Below, piece by piece: positions 791 through 13,001 of a DNA stretch of 64,000 nucleotides. The position numbers and the translations under genes are program-made. Where the stretch lies: positions 62,001 through 126,000 of the forward strand of contig NIVC01001008.1 in the NCBI GenBank assembly GCA_002269645.1, written 5' to 3'. This DNA is from Macrostomum lignano. Lineage: Eukaryota. The notes beneath the pieces are model-generated. The model was not told the DNA's origin. It saw nothing but the letters and a program-made list of their open reading frames with translations, and searched no databases. Positions within the stretch are counted from its first letter, which is position 1, and each line of letters begins with the position of its first letter.

Positions 791-2698
791 CTAGTTGTTG
801 CCTTCGGGCGGCGGCATCGGCTGGCTTGGCATCCCAGCGGCAGCTTCATACGGCGGCGGCTTGTCGCCAAGGTCGGCATCGGTTGGAGCGCTGGCGGCAG
901 TGCCGGGCGGCGGCATGTAGCAGGCATTGTAGGCCGGCGGCATCGGCGCCCCCGCGGCGGCGGTATTGGGATAGTTAAAAGACGAATTGTCGTAGGCGGC
1001 CGGTTGCTGCAGCGGCGGTGGCGGCGGGTGCTGCTGCTGCACCGGGTAGCTGCCGGGCGGTGCCGGCGGCAGGTCGCTACGAGTTCCAGCGCCAGTTCCG
1101 GCCGTTTCGCGCCGTCGCTGAGCTGCCACAGCCCGATGGTAGAACGCCATCCGGGTGCCGAACACGGCGAGCACGGTGAGGCCGCCGATGATCAGGCCGA
1201 TGGACCAGTAGGGAAACGAGAAAAAACTGCTCGAAGACTTTTTGCTACTCAGAGTCCGGTCAAGCGTAGTGAGGTTGTGGAATTCGCTCTCTCCGCCGAT
1301 GCTGCTGCTGCACAAGTAGCGAAGATCCTTCCAGCAGTTCTCGCGGTAGTACGAGTTGAATCTGTAGATCACGCAGCGGCAGCTGCCAGTTGAACAGCCG
1401 GAGCTACTGGAGCTTGAGCTGTAGAACTTGAGACTACCGCTAGAGCTGAAAAATCGGGAGCAGAGGGAGGGAGTGAGTAATAAATGTTCAGTATAGGAGC
1501 TTGGGCATTAACTACGATGCAACTAGCAATAGAGTCAATTGGTAACAAATTGAGACAAGTAGCTTGATGTTAATTAGTTCACCTGATAAGAGAGTAAGAC
1601 ACTGTAGAGATACTGTAATTGATGTTAATTAGTTCACCTGATAAGAGAGTAAGACACTGAGAAGATAATTGATGTTAATTAGTTCACCTGATAAGAGAGT
1701 AAGACACTGTAGAGATAATTGATGTTAATTAGTTCACCTGATAAGAACGTAAGACACTGAGAAGATAATTGATGTTAATTAGTTCACCTGATAAGAGAGT
1801 AAGACACTGTAGAGATAATTGATGTTAATTAGTTCACCTGATAAGAACGTAAGACACTGAGAAGATAATTGATGTTAATTAGTTCACCTGATAAGAGAGT
1901 AAGACACTGTAGAGATAATTGATGCTAATTAGTTCACCTGGTAAAAGCGTAAGACAGGAAGCTGTTGTGCTCTGCTTACCTGACGAGAAACTTATTAGCG
2001 TCCAAAAAGTACACTCCAGACGAAGAGTCGGCGGCCCCAAGCCACACCTTTGTCAAGCTAGACCAGCCTGAACTCGAAATTGCCGATTTAAGCGCGCTGC
2101 TGGAGTCAAAGCTCAAGGCTAAATTAGCTCGCACCTGGCGGCACGCGCCGAGGGCGGTATTAAAAGTGGTCCCTGATGCGTCGGGACGCGCAGAGCCGAA
2201 GCACTTATTGTTGTAGGAGACCCACCAGGATGGACAGCCGTGAACGGCCTCAATGTCTAGCATGATCAGCTCGTTGTAGAATGGAGACGGCAGGCTGCTG
2301 GACAAGATGGCGTACAGGCTGTTTCCAGGCGTGGCGAATGCCCGGTACACGGTATCATTGGAGGAAGTCAGGGAAGCAACGAACTCGCCTCCAGAGCCAT
2401 GGTTGGTGCTCAGGCTGAGCCGCGTATACGTTGACTTCAGGCTGCCGTTGACCCGGATGTAATAATAGGCGGATGTTAGCAGGTTGTTGCGGATAAGCAC
2501 GTGGCATGTTGGTACAGCTTCGCTGATTTCTAGTCGAAGGCCAAACTGGGTTTCCGTTGGAGTGAAGTAGGCAGGGCTGGACCCATCGCTGCAGTTGTAC
2601 ACGGGAAAAGAGGCGCTTTGGCTAGAAACGCCTGGCAACAGAATCAGCGGCAGCAGAAGCAGCTGCAGCAGGAACACTGGATGCTCGAGGCGACACAT
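791..2698 (-). CDS. Type I membrane protein: signal peptide, CUB-like domain, C-type lectin-like domain, TM, Pro-rich PPxY tail (paralog 1)
   Basis: Exons 2698-1980 and 1445-791, phase-2 intron (AG|GTAAGC ... tttttcag|C). Signal peptide MCRLEHPVFLLQLLLLPLILLPGVSS; CTLD pattern CPSWW...KCF...C...WLGA...CRCV...CWKDLRYLC; TM WSIGLIIGGLTVLAVFG; PPAY and PPPY in the tail. The CUB assignment rests on pattern only. Confidence 0.85.
1564..1956. repeat. 50-bp intronic minisatellite
   Basis: Unit ttgatgttaattagttcacctgataagagagtaagacactgtagagataa, about 8 copies. Confidence 0.95.
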
Positions 2699-2767
2699 TG
2701 CCGATTGAGGCAGAAGTGGCAAAAGAAGATTGTGGCATTTATTACAATTGATTGCTCATAAACCTAG

Positions 2768-3581
2768 GAGAGGCAGATTCAATGAGTTGAGGGGGAGCTG
2801 AGACTCTGAGAGGCAGATTCAATGAGTTGAGGGGGAGCTGAGACTCTGAGAAGCAGATTCAATGAGTTGAGGGGGAGCTGAGACTCTGAGAAGCAGATTC
2901 AATGAGTTGAGGGGGAGCTGAGACTCTGAGAGGCAGATTCAATGAGTTGAGGGGGAGCTGAGACTCTGAGAGGCAGATTCAATGAGTTGAGGGGGAGCTG
3001 AGACTCTGAGAGGCAGATTCAATGAGTTGAGGGGGAGCTGAGACTCTGAGAGGCAGATTCAATGAGTTGAGGGGAGCTGAGAGGCACATTCAATGAGTTG
3101 AGGGGGAGCTGAGACTCTGAGAAGCAGATTCAATGAGTTGAGGGGGAGCTGAGACTCTGAGAGGCAGATTCAATGAGTTGAGGGGGAGCTGAGACTCTGA
3201 GAGGCAGATTCAATGAGTTGAGGGGGAGCTGAGACTCTGAGAGGCAGATTCAATGAGTTGAGGGGGAACTGAGACTCTGAAAGGCAGATTCAATGAGTTG
3301 AGGGGAGCTGAGAGGCACATTCAATGAGTTGAGGGGGAGCTGAGAGGCAGATTCAATGAGTTGAGGGGGAGCTGAGAGGCAGATTCAATGAGTTGAGGGG
3401 GAGCTGAGAGGCACATTCAATGAGTTGAGGGGGAGCTGAGAGGCAGATTCAATGAGTTGAGGGGGAGCTGAGAGGCAGATTCAATGAGTTGAGGCGGAGC
3501 TGAGAGGCAGATTCAATGAGTTGAGGGGGAGCTGAGAGGCAGATTCAATGAGTTGAGGCGGAGCTGAGAGGCAGATTCAAT
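2768..3581. repeat. 40/32-bp G-rich minisatellite
   Basis: Unit gagaggcagattcaatgagttgagggggagct(gagactct); the right part uses the 32-bp form. Confidence 0.95.
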
Positions 3582-4232: not shown

Positions 4233-5882
4233 TCAGGCTTCGCTGGCGCCACCGTCGTCGCCAAAGGCGGCCAGAGCGGCAGCGTAGGACGGCGGAGGCT
4301 CCGGCTGGTTCGGCGAGTCCTCGACCGAGTCGGCTGATGCGGCGGTCAGCGCGGACGGACTCGGCGTGGCTGCGGCTGCCGCTTCAGCGTAGCTCGGAGG
4401 TCCTTCGTCATCATCTGGCGGAGCATACAATTCAGCACCGGTGCCGGACTCTGCTGCATTGGTTTCCATGACAACCGAGTCCGAGTCTATTGAGTTCAAA
4501 ATCTCCGACACCGCAGCCGCCACATCGTAGCTCGGCGGGCCGCCGTCGGCCGAATCGTCCACTGCGACGTCAATGTTTCCAGGATCCGTAGCAACGGTTG
4601 CCGTAGCAACTGACTCAGTCTGAGAGTTTGCCACATCTTCCAGATCGGGCGTGCCGCCATCGCGCACACCGCTGGCAGCTCGAGAACGCGTGAATCGCAG
4701 ACACCTGCGCAGCCGGGACCGAAGCCGGCTCAGGCAGGTGCGCAGTCGCGAGGCCGGCCTGCTGGTGGGGCAGTCATTGTCTCGCGCGAAAAACAGCCCA
4801 AACAGGACAGCGCCAAAAAGACAGCCAAAGATTAACAGCCCGCAGCTGAAGCCGGAGCAAACTTTTTCGTCATCAGAGACAAGAGATCCGTCCAACAAGT
4901 CATCGAGGCCGTCCAAGTCGTAAACCGGTCGGACTAAACAGTCAGCGCAGCCGCTGCACAGGTAGGGCAGCTTCTTGTCGCAGTCAGCCAAGAAGTATTC
5001 GCCCTTAGCAACAAACACGCAGCGGCAAGACCAGCGCGAACAGTTCATCGAGATGCCGTGGCTGAAGTCCCGAGACTCTTCCACCCTGCAGAGAAAAAGT
5101 TTCGATTCAATCGATTTAAAAAAGATCGAAAAAATGCTCATTAACTAGTAGAAGACTCACACAAGAGGCAGCCCGAGCTCCTTGGCACTGAGAAAGTACA
5201 CCGAGTACTTGCTGGCTGCCGCCCCGATCCACACCGGCTGATCGGGTGGCCAGCCTGAGGCGGACAGGCCGCTCCTCAACTCACTGACGGACCCGAAGTC
5301 CATCGCCAGGTTGGCTCCCACGTGACGGCACCCAGTCACCGCCTCGTCGAACGACGCAAACGAGTTCTCTACAGACGCCGCACCGTAGCAGCTGCCGTTG
5401 CTGTAGAACCAGTTCCTGGGACACTTCGTCACCAGCTCGATGTCCAGCAGCACCTCATCTGATGAGCCCGCCAGAGATGGGCTGCTCAGGCTGGCATAGA
5501 TGCTCCAATACTGCATTGCGAATGCTCGGTACAAGCCCTGGTTTTTGTGCGTCACCATGGCGACCTGCGAGCCGCCGAGCTGGCGAGTGCGCAGAATCAG
5601 CACTGAGGACTGATGGCGAAGCTGGCCGATCAGTCTGACATAGAAATGCCACCTGCTGGCTCCGGTGGCGCTGCCGACAAGCAGCGAGTGGCAGGAGCGG
5701 CTGCCGCCTGCGCCGCCGATGCTCAACCGCAGCTGCAGCGACTCGCCGGGCCGGATCGACCTCGGAGCTGGCGATCCTGCGGCTGCGTTGCTGCAGTTGA
5801 GCAGCGGCCCGCCGCCCGCCACCACCAGCGGCAGCAGCAGCGGCAGCAGCAACAGCAGCGACAGAGGCAGATTGGCTTGTGA
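4233..5882 (-). CDS. Type I membrane protein: CUB-like + C-type lectin-like + TM + 3x PPSY tail (paralog 2); start codon not in the local sequence
   Basis: Exons 5882-5161 and 5085-4233, 75-nt phase-2 intron at the same position as in paralog 1. CPRNW...SCY...C...WIGA...CRCV...CDKKLPYLC; TM CGLLIFGCLFGAVLFGLFF; three PPSY motifs. The hydrophobic signal peptide begins right after the acceptor tttcag at 5883. Confidence 0.8.
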
Positions 5883-6177
5883 CTGAAAGCATAATTTACA
5901 GAATAATATTAGATACCTTGGACTGAAGTGCCTACTACATATATATAGTAGAAGATTCGAGCCAGCGAAATTAGCAAAACTTTCCTAGACGATGTGAAAT
6001 TTCCAGATTATGAAGTTTCTAGCTTGTCTGTTTTGGCCTTAGGTCTATCAAAATTTAAATAAATCGACAAGAAAACAGCACAGTTTTTCGAGAAACAAGA
6101 CAAAATGCAATGTTCTACTTTGCCGATCGGTTTAACGCTTTTTCACTTCGTCAGAAAATGCAATTCTACGAGCTAAT

Positions 6178-9100
6178 TCACTGACTATCACCAGGCGCGT
6201 CCAGCACCCAGATTCTCTTCTGCATCCGGTCAGCAGACGGCGCTGGGAACAGCGCATCCCGCACGCAGGCGTCCAGTTCCTCCAGCGCCAGGCGCACCTG
6301 CACCAATGCGGCCTCGTCTCGTTCGACCGATTCGGCCAGCCGCAGAGCCCGGTGCAGCTCGGACAGACAGGCGGCCGGCAGACCGGCCAGGCTGAGGCGG
6401 TCGCAGGCGCGCACCAGCTGGCAGAGGAGGTGAGCGGCCGCCCGTCTCGGCAGCGGGTCCGGATCCGAGCGTAGCAGCGAGCAGGCGCAGCCGAGAATCT
6501 CCTGCAGCCCGACTGACGGCCTGTCCAGGCACCACCAGCGCTGACGGCCGCACAGTTCGGCGAGGCAGCTGACGGCGCTGGCACGCAGCTGCGGCTCCGG
6601 GTCGCGGGCACCTAGCAGAAGCGGCCCAACTATGCGACTGGTCTGGCTGGGAAGCAGCTCGTTCAAATAGCGGCTGCAGCGGACCATTGACTGCGGTGGC
6701 GGTGGCGGGTTCGTTTGCACTAGCCAAGCATGAGGAATGCAGCTTGTGAAGATTGAGGCTGTGGGAATGCAGCTTGTGAAGATTGAGGCTGTGGGAATGC
6801 AGCTTGTGAAGATTGAGACTGTGGGAATGCAGCTTGTGAAGATTGAGACTGTGGGAATGCAGCTTGTGAAGAATGAGGCTGTGGGAATGCAGCTTGTGAA
6901 GATTGAGACTGTGGGAATGCAGCTTGTGAAGATTGAGGCTGTGGGAATGCAGCTTGTGAAGATTGAGACTGTGGGAATGCAGCTTGTGAAGATTGAGACT
7001 GTGGGAATGCAGCTTGTGAAGAATGAGGCTGTGGGAATGCAGCTTGTGAAGATTGAGACTGTGGGAATGCAGCTTGTGAAGAATGAGGCTGTGGGAATGC
7101 AGCTTGTGAAGATTGAGACTGTGGGAATGCAGCTTGTGAAGATTGAGGCTGTGGGAATGCAGCTTGTGAAGATTGAGACTGTGGGAATGCAGCTTGTGAA
7201 GATTGAGACTGTGGGAATGCAGCTTGTGAAGAATGAGGCTATGGGAATGCAGCTTGTGAAGATTGAGGCTGTGGGAATGCAGCTTAGGAACTGCGGGAAT
7301 GCAGTTGAAGAGAGCAAACCCCTGACAGTAGATGATCGACATGAAGCTTCCTGAATCACCTCGCCAATTCGTAGCCGCAGCTCTGTGGATCGCCGTCGCC
7401 CTTCGGCGCCGCCTGGTCCGTCGCCGGGCCCAAAGAGGCCGGCCAGCAGTGGCAGCAGGCGGTCGGGCAGCTGGCAGGCCAGCACAGCCAGTGCCTCGGC
7501 GGCGGGCAGGTGCACATAGCTGTCAGGATGATCGGCGCACATCTGCAACAGCCGGGCGCAGGCGTCGGCTAGGCGGGGACCGCGCGGAGCGCCGGCGCGC
7601 AGCTGTCGCGTCAGCGCCAAAATGCCGGCGCCCATTCGCGGCGGCTCGCCAGACTGGATGTCGGCGAAGACGGCACGGTAGGCGGCTGGCGCCTAGGAGG
7701 AACCAGGACACCGTTTGAGGTCATTTAAAATAGAATTGAGGGACAAAAGTACAAAGTAGAATGTACTTAGTTATTTGCTAATCAAGGCGACAGTCGACCC
7801 GCAGCCAGCCAGAAGGCAAGCAGTCGTCATGCCCATTTTTCTGACCTCTGAGCAGGCACACGCACCCGCTCACACAGGGTGTACAACGGTCCTTGAATTT
7901 CTTATCGTCAGGCATGTAAACACACAGGCGGTTGACACAAGCACCGGGCAAATATTTGTGCACGAGCCCCAAATTAATTATAGGCCACGAACGTAATTGA
8001 TCCCTGGACAGTTGTTCCAATCCAGTGACCCAATTATCGAATATGAAAACCATAACAGTATGGATCTAAGTCTCTATGACCGTAATGTTATGAATCAGGG
8101 CGTCAAATCACGGAAACTTGAGGGTCTGGGGGGGAGAGACGATAAATACTTACAGGAAGTTAATATCAAAGGCAGCATCAATTATCAAAGTCACCAATCA
8201 ATCATCAAAGATATCAATCAATTATCAGACATTAATCAATCATCAAAATCAATTATTAATTACCAAGGATAAACAATCATCTAACGCATCAATAAATCAT
8301 CAAAAGGATCAATCAATGATGAAATGCATCAATCATCAAATGCATCAATCAATCATGAAATGCATCAATCAATCATAATATGCATCAATCAATCATGAAA
8401 TGCAATAATCAATCATGAAATGCATCAATCAATCATCAAATGCATCAATCATTCATGAAATGCAATAATCAATCATCAAATGCATCAATCAATCATCAAA
8501 TGCAATAATCAATCATCAAATGCATCAATCAATCATCAAATGCATCAATCATTCATGAAATGCATCAATCAATCATCAAATGCATCAATCAATCATGAAA
8601 TGCATCAATCAATCATCAAATGCAATAATCAATCATGAAATGCATCAATCATTCATGAAATGCAATAATCAATCATCAAATGCATCAATCAATCATCAAA
8701 TGCATCAATCATTCATGAAATGCAATAATCAATCATCAAATGCATCAATCAATCATCAAATGCATCAATCAATCATCAAATGCATCAATCAATCATGAAA
8801 TGCAATAATCAATCATGAAATGCAATAATCAATCATCAAATGCATCAATCAATCATCAAATGCATCAATCAATCATCAAATGCATCAATCAATCATCAAA
8901 TGCATCAATCAATCATCAAATGCATCAATCATTCATGAAATGCAATAATCAATCATCAAATGCATCAATCATGAAATGCATCAATCAATCATGAAATGCA
9001 TCCATCAATCATGAAATGCGCCCACCTCTCCTTCCTCGTCTTCGACTTCCTTCTCCGTCTTCTCCTCGTCGCCGGGATTCAACAGAGCCGACCCCGACAG

Positions 9101-12100
9101 TAGAAGGTCCGACACTGCCGTGGGCCGCGTCCGACACGCCTCGTCGATGTCATCGCCGACGCTCACCCGGCCGAGGGTGGCCGTCCGCACAGCCAAGCTG
9201 CGGGCCAGCTGACGTGTTGCCTCCGGAAGGTCGGGACGGCCGGCCGCCTCCAGCAGCGTCGGTGTCAGCGCTGCGACCTCGGCGTTGCCGCCGGCCGAGT
9301 GCAGGCCGAGCGTCACCGCCGACACGATCGACAGGGCGAGCTCGAGCGATTCGCGCCGCTGCTCATCCAGCTCGGCTGACGAAGCCGCCGATGGCAGCAT
9401 TGTGTGCCGCAGCAGCGACTGGCACAGGCTGGCCAAGTCGGCCGGCTGGGCGGTTGAGAAAACTCGCTCTGCCAGCCGCGGCTCCTGGCACAGGCGGACA
9501 AGCGCGGACAGCTGGCCGAGGCCCATGCAGCCACCGTTGGTTGAGAACGAATCGGACAGATCTTTGAGCAGCCGGCCGAACAACCTGCCGGACAGGCCCG
9601 GACGACCGGAACTGTCGCTGGTTGAGTCGAGCAGCGCCAAAACAACATCCGCAGCGATCAGGCGCAGCGCCGGATCGCTGACATCCGGGAGCTGGACGTG
9701 GCGCGGGCGAACTAGGATCGAATCTGAATGAGATAGGCAGCGTTTGAAATTGTGCACAGATTTTTTTGATATACAAAATAATACCCAGATACTTATATTT
9801 TACTATTAGTAGTTCACATAACTCTTTTTTGAGTAACCTTTTTCTTGACTTTTTACTTACTAAAGTAGGCTAGTTCGACTTTCATAGCTTCAGTTTCTTC
9901 ATAGATCTGAAGGCTGCGTACGGCTGTTCAGTCCAAGGACTGAGGGGTCGCCACACACCCCCTCAATTACTCAGTTAATGCTGGCACCCATTTTACAGCT
10001 GGGTGAACTGAAGCAATACAGAGTTAAGTGTCTTACTCAAGGACACAAATTGTTCCGAGTGGGATCGGGAATCGAACCGCCAACCTTCAAGTCGTGAGTC
10101 CGACGCTGTTGACTCAATCCCCGTGTTTCTTATCTGATTATATTGAATTGAGCAATGCCAGAGAGCTAGAATAATGTACCTGGCAAGGAGAATTCCACGC
10201 TAGGCAGGTGACCGCCGTTCACCGGCTCACTCAGCAGGCGGTGCAGCAGACCGGTCCCCAGCTCCAACGGGTAGACTGCGGTAAATACAGACAGAGAGGC
10301 TGTAAGTCGATCGCACAGTTGGGCAAGATCGCCACCACGCTGTTGCTGTTTCCGCTGCTGCAGTTCCGCAGTTGCTGCAACTAGAAGGTAGAACAAAGGA
10401 TCAATCAGGCCGGCAAGTCGACGCAAGAAATCTGAGTCGGTCTGCTTGACGCAGGAGAGCAGGATGCTCAACCGGCTGAGCGGCTCTGTCAGATTCACAG
10501 CGTCTTCTGGTGCAGATCCAGCAGGGCATGAAGCATCTTTATTCGATGCCGCAGGCTTATTCGATCTAATGACGTCATCTTCTGGATCAATAGGCTCAGC
10601 AGAGTCGATGACGTCATTATTTGAAGCTGCGTGTCTTTTGGGCGAGATGACGTCATCTTTTGAATCAACAGACTTAGACGAAGTGATGACGTCATTTTTT
10701 GAATCATCAGGCTTAGACGAAGTGATGACGTCATCTTTTGAATCAAAAGACTTAGACGAAGTGGTGACGTTATCGTTTGAAACTGCAAGTTCAGACGCGT
10801 CGGCGCTGGCAGCGGCGGTAGCAGGCCGCCTGGCGGCCAGACAGTTAAAGTCGGCCAGCACGCAGTCGCGAAGCAGCTGGTCGAGAGTCGCCGCCGCCAG
10901 GCTGTTGGCGCCGCCGCACCAGCAGACGATGACGTGACAGCAGGCCGATTGCAACCGCTTATCCGCAGGGCCGAGGCGTCGATAAACTTGAAAAAGCTGC
11001 TTCGCTAGACTGTCCGAAAATTTGGCCGGACAAGCGCTTAGCAGGCCGGTCACGCTGGTCACTTTCTCGGACACCGAGTGTCGACTGTCTCCGGCGCCAG
11101 CGGCCGCCGCGTCGTCAAATACGGCGCCCAGTAGGCCGAGAACGCCGTCAGGTCGTTGAAGGAGCTGCTCGGACAAAAGGTGGGAGGCGGCTCGGACCAG
11201 CCACTTGGCTGCAGAGTCGGGCAGTCTAAAGGGAGGGGTTGGCATCGGGAACAACTGCATGAAAGATGAGCTTGTGGTAATCTTCAAGACTTTCAGGCTT
11301 AAATTATGGAATTCGTTCGGTTTCCAAGAACGGTTTAACTTTAATTTCAAGAAAAGAACGGTTTAACTTTAATTTCAAGAAAGAACTCAGATCAGTTTTG
11401 ACATGAAATTCGAGTCAGTTTCGGGATGGAATTTGGGCCAGTTTCGGGATGGAATTCGAGTCAGTTTCGCGATTGAATTCGGGCCAGTTTCGGGATGGAA
11501 TTCGGGCAGTTTCGGAATGGAATTCAGGTCGAAGGATGGAATTCAGGCCAGTTTCGGGGTGGAAGTCGGGCCAGTTTTAAGATGGAATTCAAGCCAGTTT
11601 CGTGATGGAATTCGGGCCAGTTTCGGCATGGAATTCGGGTTAATTTCGGTCTGCCAACCCGCTGCCTCACCCGGCCCTCCTGTGCAGGCAGAGCAGCTCT
11701 CGCATGGCGGTCGCGCAGGGCAGGCGGCTCAGCAGGCCGTGCAGCCGCCGCCTGGCCGCCGTCCGCTCCGCCAGCCCGTCCGGCGCGGCGGCCTCCGGGC
11801 CGAAGGACAGCTGCAGCAGCACCGCCAGCCTGTCCGCCAAGAATCGGCCAGCCGCTACAGCCACCGCGCCATCACCCTCTGTCCACCGGCCGAGAGTTTC
11901 GGTCAGCCAGGCCAGCCGACGCCGTCGTTCGGACGCGTCCGATGGAGGCCGGACACGCAGGAGGTTGGCGCCGGCCGTGCCGCTGGCCAACCGGTCGGAG
12001 AGAGGCGGACCGACGCCCGGCGCCAGACAAGGCCGAATGCCGAGGCCGGCTAGGAAATCCAGGCCAGCCTGGGCCAGGGACACGTCGCCAATAGCAACCT

Positions 12101-13001
12101 GGATTGGAGCGAAAAACAAATGTTTTCCAATATTGAAAGCGGCACTTTAACTTGGACAATGTCCCATCAATACTGAAAGCGGCACTTTAACTTGGACAAT
12201 GTCCCATCAATACTGAAAGCGGCACTTTAACTTGGACAATGTCCCATCAATATTGAAAATGGCACTTTAACTTGGACAATGTCACATCAATATTGAAAGT
12301 GGCACTTTAACTTGGACAATGTCCCATCAATATTGAAAATGGCACTTTAACTTGGACAATGTCCCATCAATATTGAAAGTGGCACTTTAACATAAACAAC
12401 GGCACCGCAATATTGAAAGTGGCACTTTAACATAAACAACGGCACCGCAATATTGAAAGTGGCACTTTAACATAAACAACGGCACCGCAATATTGAAAGT
12501 GGCACTTTAACATAAACAACGGCACCGCAATATTGAAAGTGGCACTTTAACATAAACAACGGCACCGCAATATTGAAAGTAGCACCTTTATGTTACAAGT
12601 GGCGCCCCTCAACACTTCAATTTTGAAAACTGACCCCTCTAGTGGCGGCCTCTATGCAACAAAAGCAATTTGTGCCAGACCTTGTCGGCGTTGCCAGGCT
12701 CCTGAGCGGCCTCAGCCAGCCAGTCGATGCCAGCCGCCACAGCCCGCAGGTAGCGCCAGTAGAGCAGCGGCTCAGCGGCGGCCTCAGCCACGGCGGCCGT
12801 CCAAGCTGACGGCGAGATGGTGCCGGCTCTGGCAGACGCCTCGGCAAGGAACGCTTCAGTCTTGGCAGCAACAGCGAGGTCCAGCTGCGAGTGACCGGAG
12901 CCTCCGCCACTGCTGCAGCTACCGGCATCAGCCTGTTCGCCAGTGCTCCATCTGAGCAGTTGGTGGAGAGCAGATCGAGCTGCTGACAAATTTTCTGACA
13001 T
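6178..13001 (-). CDS. TANGO6: Transport and Golgi organization protein 6 homolog (TMCO7/Rtp1 family, HEAT-repeat)
   Basis: Six phase-consistent exons: 13001-12681, 12098-11671, 11225-10180, 9711-9026, 7692-7360, 6690-6178. Family-like motifs recognised from memory: LGIRPCLAPGVGPPL, LLSEQLLQRPDGV, DSYVHLPAAEALA, RLRIGE, GARDPEPQLRASAVSCLAELC, QKRIWVLD. Confidence 0.88.
6734..7285. repeat. 30-bp minisatellite in the last TANGO6 intron (~18 units)
   Basis: Unit ggaatgcagcttgtgaaga(t/a)tgag(g/a)ctgtg. Confidence 0.97.
7815..7930 (+). repeat. Unclassified dispersed repeat, copy 1 of 7 (core GCTCACACAGGGTGTACA)
   Basis: Core at 7868-7885; homologous copies near 20255-20410(-), 21808-21845(-), 29545-29655(+), 45060-45125(+), 56278-56375(+), 59110-59262(-). 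Confidence 0.8.
8180..9018. repeat. ATCA-rich ~20-bp tandem array in TANGO6 intron 4
   Basis: Unit aatcatcaaatgcatcaatc and variants; runs to within ~10 nt of the donor at 9025. Confidence 0.9.
9900..10112 (-). mobile_element. tRNA-derived CORE-type SINE (head partly truncated)
   Basis: Minus strand has a B-box (ggttcgattcc) followed by tgtgtccttgagtaagacacttaactc...cagttcacccagctgtaaaatggg, resembling the MIR/CORE central domain. Confidence 0.75.
10565..10775 (-). repeat. 39-bp coding tandem repeat in TANGO6 exon 3 (SKxxDSKDDVITS-like)
   Basis: TGACGTCA at 10570, 10609, 10648, 10687 and 10726, plus a 1-mismatch copy at 10765. Confidence 0.85.
11403..11645. repeat. ~23-bp degenerate minisatellite (TANGO6 intron 2)
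   Basis: Unit ggaattcgggccagtttcgggat. Confidence 0.85.
12128..12605. repeat. 40-bp minisatellite with two sub-blocks (TANGO6 intron 1)
   Basis: Shared half aatattgaaagtggcactttaac; the second half switches from ttggacaatgtcccatc to ataaacaacggcaccgc near 12390. Confidence 0.92.

Follow-up and report, generated by a model that had tools for sequence, protein, structure and literature searches.

A Macrostomum lignano receptor gene without an in-frame ATG: a candidate for a start codon donated by the spliced leader

The receptor gene BOX15_Mlig019469g2 (hereafter g2) of the flatworm Macrostomum lignano has no ATG in frame with its signal peptide; its reading frame opens directly behind a splice acceptor motif, and its start codon is likely to be donated by the AUG that ends the spliced leader. 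The gene lies downstream of a TANGO6 homologue in a 64,000-nucleotide (nt) stretch of scaffold NIVC01001008.1 (assembly GCA_002269645.1), called the window throughout. A comparison of 15,864 nt found window and scaffold identical, and the receptor gene here is therefore Mlig019469g2. All coordinates at the receptor locus are window positions on the minus strand. Three assembled copies of the locus were compared, on scaffolds NIVC01000350, NIVC01001008 (the window) and NIVC01000125, labelled L001 to L003, with L002 as the window copy; L004 is a further stretch of the window's scaffold and holds a paralogue of 437 amino acids (aa).

M. lignano has a single 35-nt spliced leader, CGGTCTCTTACTGCGAAGACTCAATTTATTGCATG, and this leader ends in ATG (PMC8629364), as a leader-donated start codon would require of the organism. 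Trans-splicing affects about 30% of its genes, operons comprise about 15%, and the most enriched trans-acceptor motif is [T/C]TNCAG, right at the junction (PMC8629364). The flatworm leaders reported so far all end in ATG and are able to supply a start codon (PMC12582326), and the description of two further Macrostomum genomes explicitly treats the ATG at the leader's end as a translation start codon (PMC10468722). A leader-donated initiator AUG has been shown in Schistosoma (Cheng et al. 2006, as cited in PMC9851317 and PMC12582326), where, in the summary given by PMC9851317, more than 40 S. mansoni cDNAs were reported to need it.

Results

The receptor frame and its upstream spacer

At the start of g2 the minus strand reads ...ttattctgtaaattATGctttcag|TCACAAGCCAATCTGCCTCTG... 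(in a longer view, ...tctaatattattctgtaaattATGctttcag|TCACAAGCCAATCTGCCTCTGTCGCTGCTG...), where the bar marks the boundary 5883/5882. The signal-peptide frame (SQANLPLSLLLLLPLLLPLVVAG...) starts right behind the motif TTTCAG (5883–5888), with base 5882 as the first base of the exon, which begins TCACAAGCCAATCTG. From this base the frame translates SQANLPLSLLLLLPLLLPLVVAGGGPLLNCS... and stays open for 241 codons, until a stop that overlaps a GT donor; the coding start of the signal peptide (5814–5882) contains no methionine, and a leader ATG would turn it into MSQANL... Read upstream, the same frame gives ...V*ESFANFAGSNLLLYICSRHFSPRYLILFCKLCFQ|SQANL with a stop at about 5987–5985, and no in-frame ATG occurs from that stop through residue 108 of the open reading frame (ORF). 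A preliminary description of this DNA had reported a signal-peptide frame with no ATG of its own, opening at a phase-0 acceptor, tttcag|TCA; reading the frame back to its stop bore this out, and sequence and translation agree at the junction.

Between the TANGO6 stop codon (TGA, 6180–6178) and the acceptor lies a spacer of 295 nt (6177–5883), on the same strand and of the length first described. By sequence and by enumeration of its ATGs, it would comprise the TANGO6 3' untranslated region and the receptor outron, and it offers no usable start codon. Its only two ATGs are at 5940–5938, followed immediately by TAG, and at 5892–5890. The second, already noted as out of frame, lies 10 nt ahead of 5882, opens a 146-codon frame rich in alanine and glycine, and is identical in the three genomic copies. 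Every detail of the earlier observation is thus confirmed.

The proposed trans-splice acceptor (5883–5888) fits the published M. lignano motif [T/C]TNCAG (PMC8629364) and is preceded, about 27 nt upstream, by a branch-like CTAAT element. A motif scan found a second match upstream, CTTCAG at 5923–5928. We rejected it as a leader site, as a leader ATG joined there would run into TAA after 8 codons and be unproductive.

Assembly error and upstream exons

A one-nucleotide indel near 5883–5892 could mask an ordinary ATG start. Assemblies built from PacBio reads are liable to indels in homopolymers, the ATG and the CAG are separated by a TTT run, and a repaired frame M-L-(S/F)-... ahead of SQANL is possible, though not needed. 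However, all three copies agree base for base between ATG 5892 and the end of the signal peptide, and show several differences elsewhere in the spacer. Given the identity of three separately assembled copies, a single-copy assembly indel is ruled out, there is no sign of an indel that restores ATG 5892, and we consider sequence error at this site very improbable. The 524-codon ORF is likewise intact in all three copies, which differ by 1–3 amino acids.

A second alternative is an unannotated exon, inside or upstream of TANGO6, that is cis-spliced to g2 and supplies the ATG. The acceptor would be usable in cis as well, acceptors common to cis- and trans-splicing having been reported in parasitic flatworms (PMC12582326), and combinations of an ATG with a downstream donor are present in the last TANGO6 exon. 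Yet an exhaustive enumeration of ATGs with an open frame to a phase-0 GT or GC donor upstream of 5883 returned none within the spacer, and the nearest candidates, inside the last TANGO6 coding exon, would prepend 6–37 unrelated residues to the signal peptide and need a promoter within that exon. The one short cis-intron that can be built, 34 nt from GT 5916–5915 to AG 5884–5883, leads back to ATG TAG TAG GCA CTT CAG TCC AAG, which agrees with the earlier claim that it runs into an in-frame stop; its donor is GC in two of the three copies. Such an exon is also absent from the transcript-based models of the three copies, and the signal peptides of the paralogues begin in the first exon, directly after the acceptor. 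We consider a cis-spliced start exon improbable.

Neither of two independent public annotations gives g2 a start codon: the transcript-based Mlig_3_7 models and the older, ML2-based UniRef models both lack one and begin at P/L or LPLVV, in keeping with the earlier model. The 90% protein cluster comprises three NCBI copies (Mlig017692g2, Mlig019469g2 and Mlig002897g2) and two UniRef models, one of which, 1551 aa long, is fused to TANGO6; none of these five members starts with M, for example as MSQANL. A search of the window for a copy of the spliced-leader gene found none.

A proposed mechanism

Since the g2 acceptor has no usable donor upstream, we propose that the leader is trans-spliced onto base 5882. 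In the g2 pre-mRNA the 3' splice site TTTCAG| (5888–5883) would receive the 35-nt leader, with the predicted chimeric junction ...ATTTATTGCATG|TCACAAGCCAATCTG. The junction would be in phase 0, the mature mRNA would read ...UUGCAUG|UCA CAA GCC..., and a scanning ribosome would meet the leader AUG first. The joined sequence, leader ATG plus TCA CAA GCC..., is MSQANLPLSLLL... and contains no stop for 524 codons after splicing; the predicted product, M-SQANLPLSLLLLLPLLLPLVVAG..., has a complete signal peptide. The genomic ATG 10 nt upstream would leave with the outron. A receptor with a signal peptide could then be made only if trans-splicing occurs at the 5882 acceptor. In its fuller version, the proposal makes g2 the second gene of a polycistronic transcript, TANGO6 > g2 > g3 (> g4), which poly(A) cleavage and trans-splicing would then separate into mRNAs.

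The leader AUG might nevertheless go unused, either because translation starts at an in-frame non-AUG codon (there are several CUGs at 5870–5850) or because g2 belongs to an untranslated or decaying paralogue family. Many in-frame CTG codons lie in the signal-peptide region, and the three copies are too alike for a decisive dN/dS, with 0–4 synonymous and 1–3 non-synonymous differences, too few to decide. On the other side, a leader joined at 5882 would present a scanning ribosome with its AUG first, and in frame, so that this AUG would be used; all three copies have an unbroken ORF of 524 codons, with all its cysteines and the WxGAA and CRCV motifs kept; and the gene belongs to a transcript-based annotation. 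This alternative also seems unlikely to us, if marginally less so than an upstream exon.

The receptor protein and its expected N-terminus

The spliced model of g2 is 100% identical to the M. lignano 'hypothetical protein BOX15_Mlig017692g2, partial', and it matches PAA73509.1 (P0002) exactly from that protein's first annotated residue onward. Exon 1 (5161–5882) encodes the signal peptide, an N-terminal cysteine-containing domain and the first part of a putative C-type-lectin-like domain. A phase-2 intron of 75 nt (5086–5160; GTGAGT...CTCTGCAG) separates it from exon 2 (4233–5085), which encodes the remainder of the lectin-like domain, a transmembrane helix and a tail with three PPSY motifs, and ends in TGA at 4235–4233.

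The N-terminus of g2 aligns within three residues of the methionine of paralogue P0011. With a donated Met, the first conserved cysteine would be residue 31, against residues 33–36 in the paralogues that have a Met of their own (counted from the sequences). Given this agreement in position, the g2 protein must start within a few residues of 5882.

From its sequence, the receptor is a lineage-specific type I single-pass membrane protein with a putative, divergent C-type-lectin-like ectodomain. Taken alone it falls below the Pfam cut-off; one paralogue matches Pfam Lectin_C (E = 8e-4), and UniRef labels its relatives 'C-type lectin domain-containing protein'. A profile of four paralogues matched, among solved structures, the C-type-lectin-like domain (CTLD) of the mannose receptor best (E = 3.8e-5), and DC-SIGN at about 5e-3. 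The likeness to these receptors lies in the predicted CTLD; the M. lignano protein is very divergent and differs from them in its extra N-terminal cysteine domain and its PPSY-rich tail. Every cysteine and the WxGAA and CRCV motifs are invariant among paralogues that are only 35–37% identical. Detectable relatives number 10 among 1.84 billion representative proteins, and the family seems to be confined to Macrostomum.

Annotated 5' ends of g2 and its neighbours

In Mlig_3_7, gene names of the form gN denote genes cut from one transcriptional unit by mapped leader reads and poly(A) (T-fill) signals (PMC5730564). We compared the annotated 5' ends of coding sequences (CDS) with acceptor motifs at g2 and its neighbours. 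In six distinct same-strand genes, the CDS begins 0–18 nt after a YTNCAG site or its mutated equivalent. The offset is 0 for the 437-aa paralogue and for TANGO6 in L003 (both at TTTCAG), and +15 at the equivalent position of TANGO6 in L002. It is +18 for g4 in L002 (TTTCAG) and for paralogue P0021 (TTTCTG), and 0, +3 and +9 for g3 in L001, L003 and L002, respectively (CTTCAG, or CTTCTG in L002). A random position would lie no more than 18 nt downstream of the motif in 4% (strict) or 9% (relaxed) of cases. The annotated 5' ends are thus anchored on acceptors, with a resolution of about 18 nt. This is what boundaries drawn from leader-trimmed reads would look like, and it is indirect evidence, not proof, that leader reads map at 5882.

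A leader ATG would be in frame and open in five of the six genes (binomial p of about 0.018 against an expectation of 1/3, for paralogues that are not independent). The predicted products begin MSQANL... for g2, MPQSAM... for g3, MSPSLLGPVAF... for P0021, MNPRFSPVAF... for the 437-aa paralogue and MSENLS... for TANGO6. The exception is the third receptor, in which a leader ATG would meet a stop after three codons; this gene has an ATG of its own.

CDS starts in Mlig_3_7 lie repeatedly +15 or +18 nt from the acceptor, even past an in-frame ATG, as in TANGO6 and g4 of L002. This looks like a systematic boundary-calling offset of the annotation pipeline.

Several points weigh against donation of the start codon to g2. 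The acceptor motif is common: YTNCAG occurs 379 times on the two strands of the window, about once per 340 nt per strand, and the prior for a phase-0 junction is 1/3. The deposited g2 CDS begins not at the acceptor but 15 nt (two copies) or 18 nt (the window copy) beyond it, where there is no AG; we attribute this to imprecise boundary calling, as the same offset recurs at TANGO6, g4 and P0021. The 5'-partial flag on g2 is a weak indicator, since g3 and P0021 are flagged partial despite having genomic ATGs, and we rejected it as proof of a missing ATG. Finally, the joining of the leader to base 5882, the use of its AUG and a primary transcript common to TANGO6 and g2 are all inferred. As evidence the motif on its own is weak; the weight comes from motif and phase 0 in combination with the missing ATG, the intact conserved ORF and the neighbouring genes. 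On this balance we consider it likely that the spliced leader donates the g2 start codon.

We also considered whether ATG 5892 could be what remains of an ancestral start in frame with the receptor, a homologue of the P0021 ATG that a 5-nt deletion displaced. We rejected this candidate: 158 of 2000 shuffles reached the score of the local alignment, the multiple alignment was noisy, and the idea is kept as speculation only.

TANGO6 copies with and without a genomic ATG

The TANGO6 homologue upstream of g2 (6178–13001, minus strand; Pfam TANGO6_N, RTP1_C1 and HEAT) starts at ATG 13001–12999 in the window. In copy L003, the start (L003:2314–2316) reads AATAATTTTTCAG|TCAGAAAATTTG (TTTTTCAG|TCAGAA), a TTTCAG acceptor without a genomic ATG. 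The window copy reads AATAATTTTTATGTCAGAAAATTTG (TTTTTATGTCAGAA), with a genomic ATG (12999–13001) in place of the CAG. This CA>AT change is the sole difference in about 240 nt around the start, and both versions encode MSENLSAARS..., the window's genomic ATG sitting exactly where a leader ATG would land. The same CAG can be deduced from the ML2-derived model P0005, which begins IFQSENLS. The match to Pfam TANGO6_N sets in at residue 102, with profile position 119, which places the MSENLS start close to the true N-terminus. Judged from these sequences, the CAG/ATG pair is the best support that we found for the leader AUG as an initiator in this species and neighbourhood.

The 437-aa paralogue (L004:8860–8880), on the same scaffold about 20 kb downstream of the window start, has its CDS right after TTTCAG| and no ATG ahead of its signal peptide; its outron contains a genomic ATG in the same frame, 15 nt inside. 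Its sequence makes this paralogue another candidate for a Met supplied by the leader, and it may represent an intermediate state. There appears to be a series, from the TANGO6 CAG/ATG pair through the outron ATG of the 437-aa paralogue to g2, which lacks an in-frame ATG and would be wholly leader-dependent. We suggest, tentatively and as the less probable view, that leader-donated and genome-encoded start codons have been interchangeable in evolution between near-identical copies in this neighbourhood. The TANGO6 change from CAG to ATG could have come about by conversion from a reverse-transcribed, trans-spliced mRNA, which would have written the leader ATG into the genome.

Possible operon membership or a promoter of its own

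The preliminary description had placed g2 in an operon, TANGO6 > receptor 2 (> receptor 1). Exact look-up identified the two downstream paralogues on the window's scaffold as Mlig019469g3 and Mlig019469g4, and the pair g2/g3 recurs in both other copies. Since g2 to g4 fall within unit Mlig019469, the proposed series TANGO6 > receptor 2 > receptor 1 is already implicit in the annotation. For the receptors the claim thus agrees with the annotation, which extends it to g4, with g3 as receptor 1. The step that places TANGO6 in the same unit as g1 is inferred, and this counts against the operon: we take TANGO6 to be g1 of Mlig019469 from the numbering of g2 and from adjacency, the look-up having been unsuccessful. 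The annotated TANGO6 CDS in L002 (2882–9687) corresponds to window 12983–6178. A homology search with the last TANGO6 exon (window 6181–6690, 170 aa) returned no match, although NCBI proteins cover it on three scaffolds, which may be a gap in the index. An attempt to rebuild the 1106-aa TANGO6 model exactly yielded 26 solutions, which were ambiguous and used poor splice sites; no solution had strong ones.

Alternatively, g2 could have a core promoter of its own in the spacer, with an outron of about 40 nt that is trans-spliced at 5882; the leader AUG would still be the initiator, and TANGO6 would be a separate transcription unit. A TATA-like element, TATATATA (5940–5947), is followed about 20 nt on by an initiator-like TCAGTC at about 5925–5920, a plausible spacing for a core promoter and a further argument against the operon. 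P0021 and the 437-aa gene have similar TATA-like strings, 45–65 nt ahead of the junction or ATG, and the majority of trans-spliced genes in M. lignano lie outside operons (PMC8629364). Against this, the spacer is AT-rich, and TATA-like strings are expected there by chance. The annotation assigns g2 to g4 to a single transcriptional unit. PMC8629364 sets the limit for operon genes at 1 kb, and with 295 nt between the TANGO6 stop and the acceptor this pair stays well below it. We therefore rate a separate promoter as a serious but less probable account, and lean slightly towards TANGO6 and g2 lying in one operon. By eye, the 295-nt spacer contains no AATAAA or ATTAAA; an AATAAA lies about 27 nt ahead of the g3 site.

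The neighbourhood of the receptor genes

The paralogue g3 (791–2716, minus strand) has its own ATG at 2698–2696. At its acceptor-equivalent site (2716–2711), 12 nt ahead of the ATG, the window copy has CTTCTG, against CTTCAG in the two others; from this sequence, the window copy of g3 may not be trans-spliced at this site. P0021, also on this scaffold, has a comparable TTTCTG. About 1.5 kb separates g2 from g3, of which 800 nt is tandem repeat. This repeat (window 2768–3569; about 22 copies of a 40-nt unit) makes up half of the spacer and fits the published inflation of operon distances by repeats. Over the whole window, Tandem Repeats Finder (TRF) lists such arrays in 42 rows, of which some overlap. 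The last TANGO6 intron contains a minisatellite (window 6734–7285) with 18 copies of a 30-nt unit and 95% matches; several of its frames are open, and a mechanical ORF of 504 codons owes part of its length to it.

TANGO6 is followed by at least six genes on the same strand, namely g2, g3, g4 and then genes of 430, 426 and 437 aa (window, L002 and L004). The sequences that were read (g2, g3, g4, the 426-aa gene and the start of the 437-aa gene) are lectin-like single-pass receptor paralogues. On the window's scaffold the g4 CDS (L002:19250–19500) enters a tandem repeat and ends in (RLVDR)n, at 462 aa; the other copy ends differently, at 411 aa. The difference is probably a copy-specific change or an annotation artefact.

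In the older UniRef model P0005 (1551 aa) the C-terminus of TANGO6 runs on into the receptor, whose signal peptide is left out; P0017 (1123 aa) has the same fusion layout by its match coordinates alone. We did not accept these fusions as real: P0005, in skipping the signal peptide, looks like a gene-predictor artefact, and the missing start codon is probably what produced them.

Discussion

The interpretation put forward in the preliminary description, a receptor whose translation would depend on trans-splicing, found support in every test that could be run. The nearest precedent is the Schistosoma leader AUG of Cheng et al. 2006, in which, as here, the leader ends in AUG, the junction is in phase, the ORF has no AUG of its own and the leader supplies Met1. 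Unlike Schistosoma, the host here is a free-living macrostomid and not a trematode; the recipient enters the secretory pathway, its whole signal peptide would rely on the donated Met, and the case is predicted from sequence.

A second comparison is with the slORFs found by slORFfinder (PMC9851317), ORFs that likewise exist only once the leader is attached to the recipient mRNA. Those were mostly picked up as new or alternative ORFs in ribosome-profiling data of nematodes, ascidians and euglenozoa, and often start at codons other than AUG, whereas in g2 the gene's main, conserved ORF would be concerned, with a canonical AUG. At the sequence level, g2 combines a leader that ends in AUG, an acceptor with no donor to pair with in cis, a junction that is in frame and the lack of a genomic AUG. 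These four features make it a candidate for the class that Cheng et al. 2006 described and that PMC9851317 calls slORFs.

The operon literature on M. lignano (Wudarski et al. 2017, PMC5730564; Ustyantsev & Berezikov 2021, PMC8629364) describes same-strand genes less than 1 kb apart after adjustment for repeats, with the downstream gene trans-spliced, g1/g2/g3 naming within one unit and tandem repeats that inflate intergenic distance; the naming and the repeats both match this locus. Unlike C. elegans, M. lignano has a single leader, without an SL2-type specialisation. These papers do not discuss start-codon donation or this locus, which to our knowledge has not been discussed in the literature; the gene identifiers had no match in the paper supplements that were searched.

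Most likely, g2 is a clean new example of a mechanism known in flatworms, not a new principle. The principle has been known since 2006, and the gene adds an example and a test bed, not a new question. It has a practical side for annotation. Trimming of the leader makes such genes look 5'-truncated (all three g2 copies carry the label 'partial' in their deposited records), and in older models the receptor is joined to TANGO6 and lacks its signal peptide. In genes of this type the leader ATG must be restored to obtain the right protein and the right signal-peptide prediction. M. lignano is amenable to transgenesis, so a leader-donated AUG can be tested in vivo, and the ATG and CAG copies of TANGO6 are a natural matched pair for this.

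If the proposal is right, expression of the g2 membrane protein would be strictly conditional on trans-splicing. The apparent interchange of donated and genomic start codons is the more interesting by-product: if true, the neighbourhood would hold a visible series of genes gaining and losing their dependence on trans-splicing.

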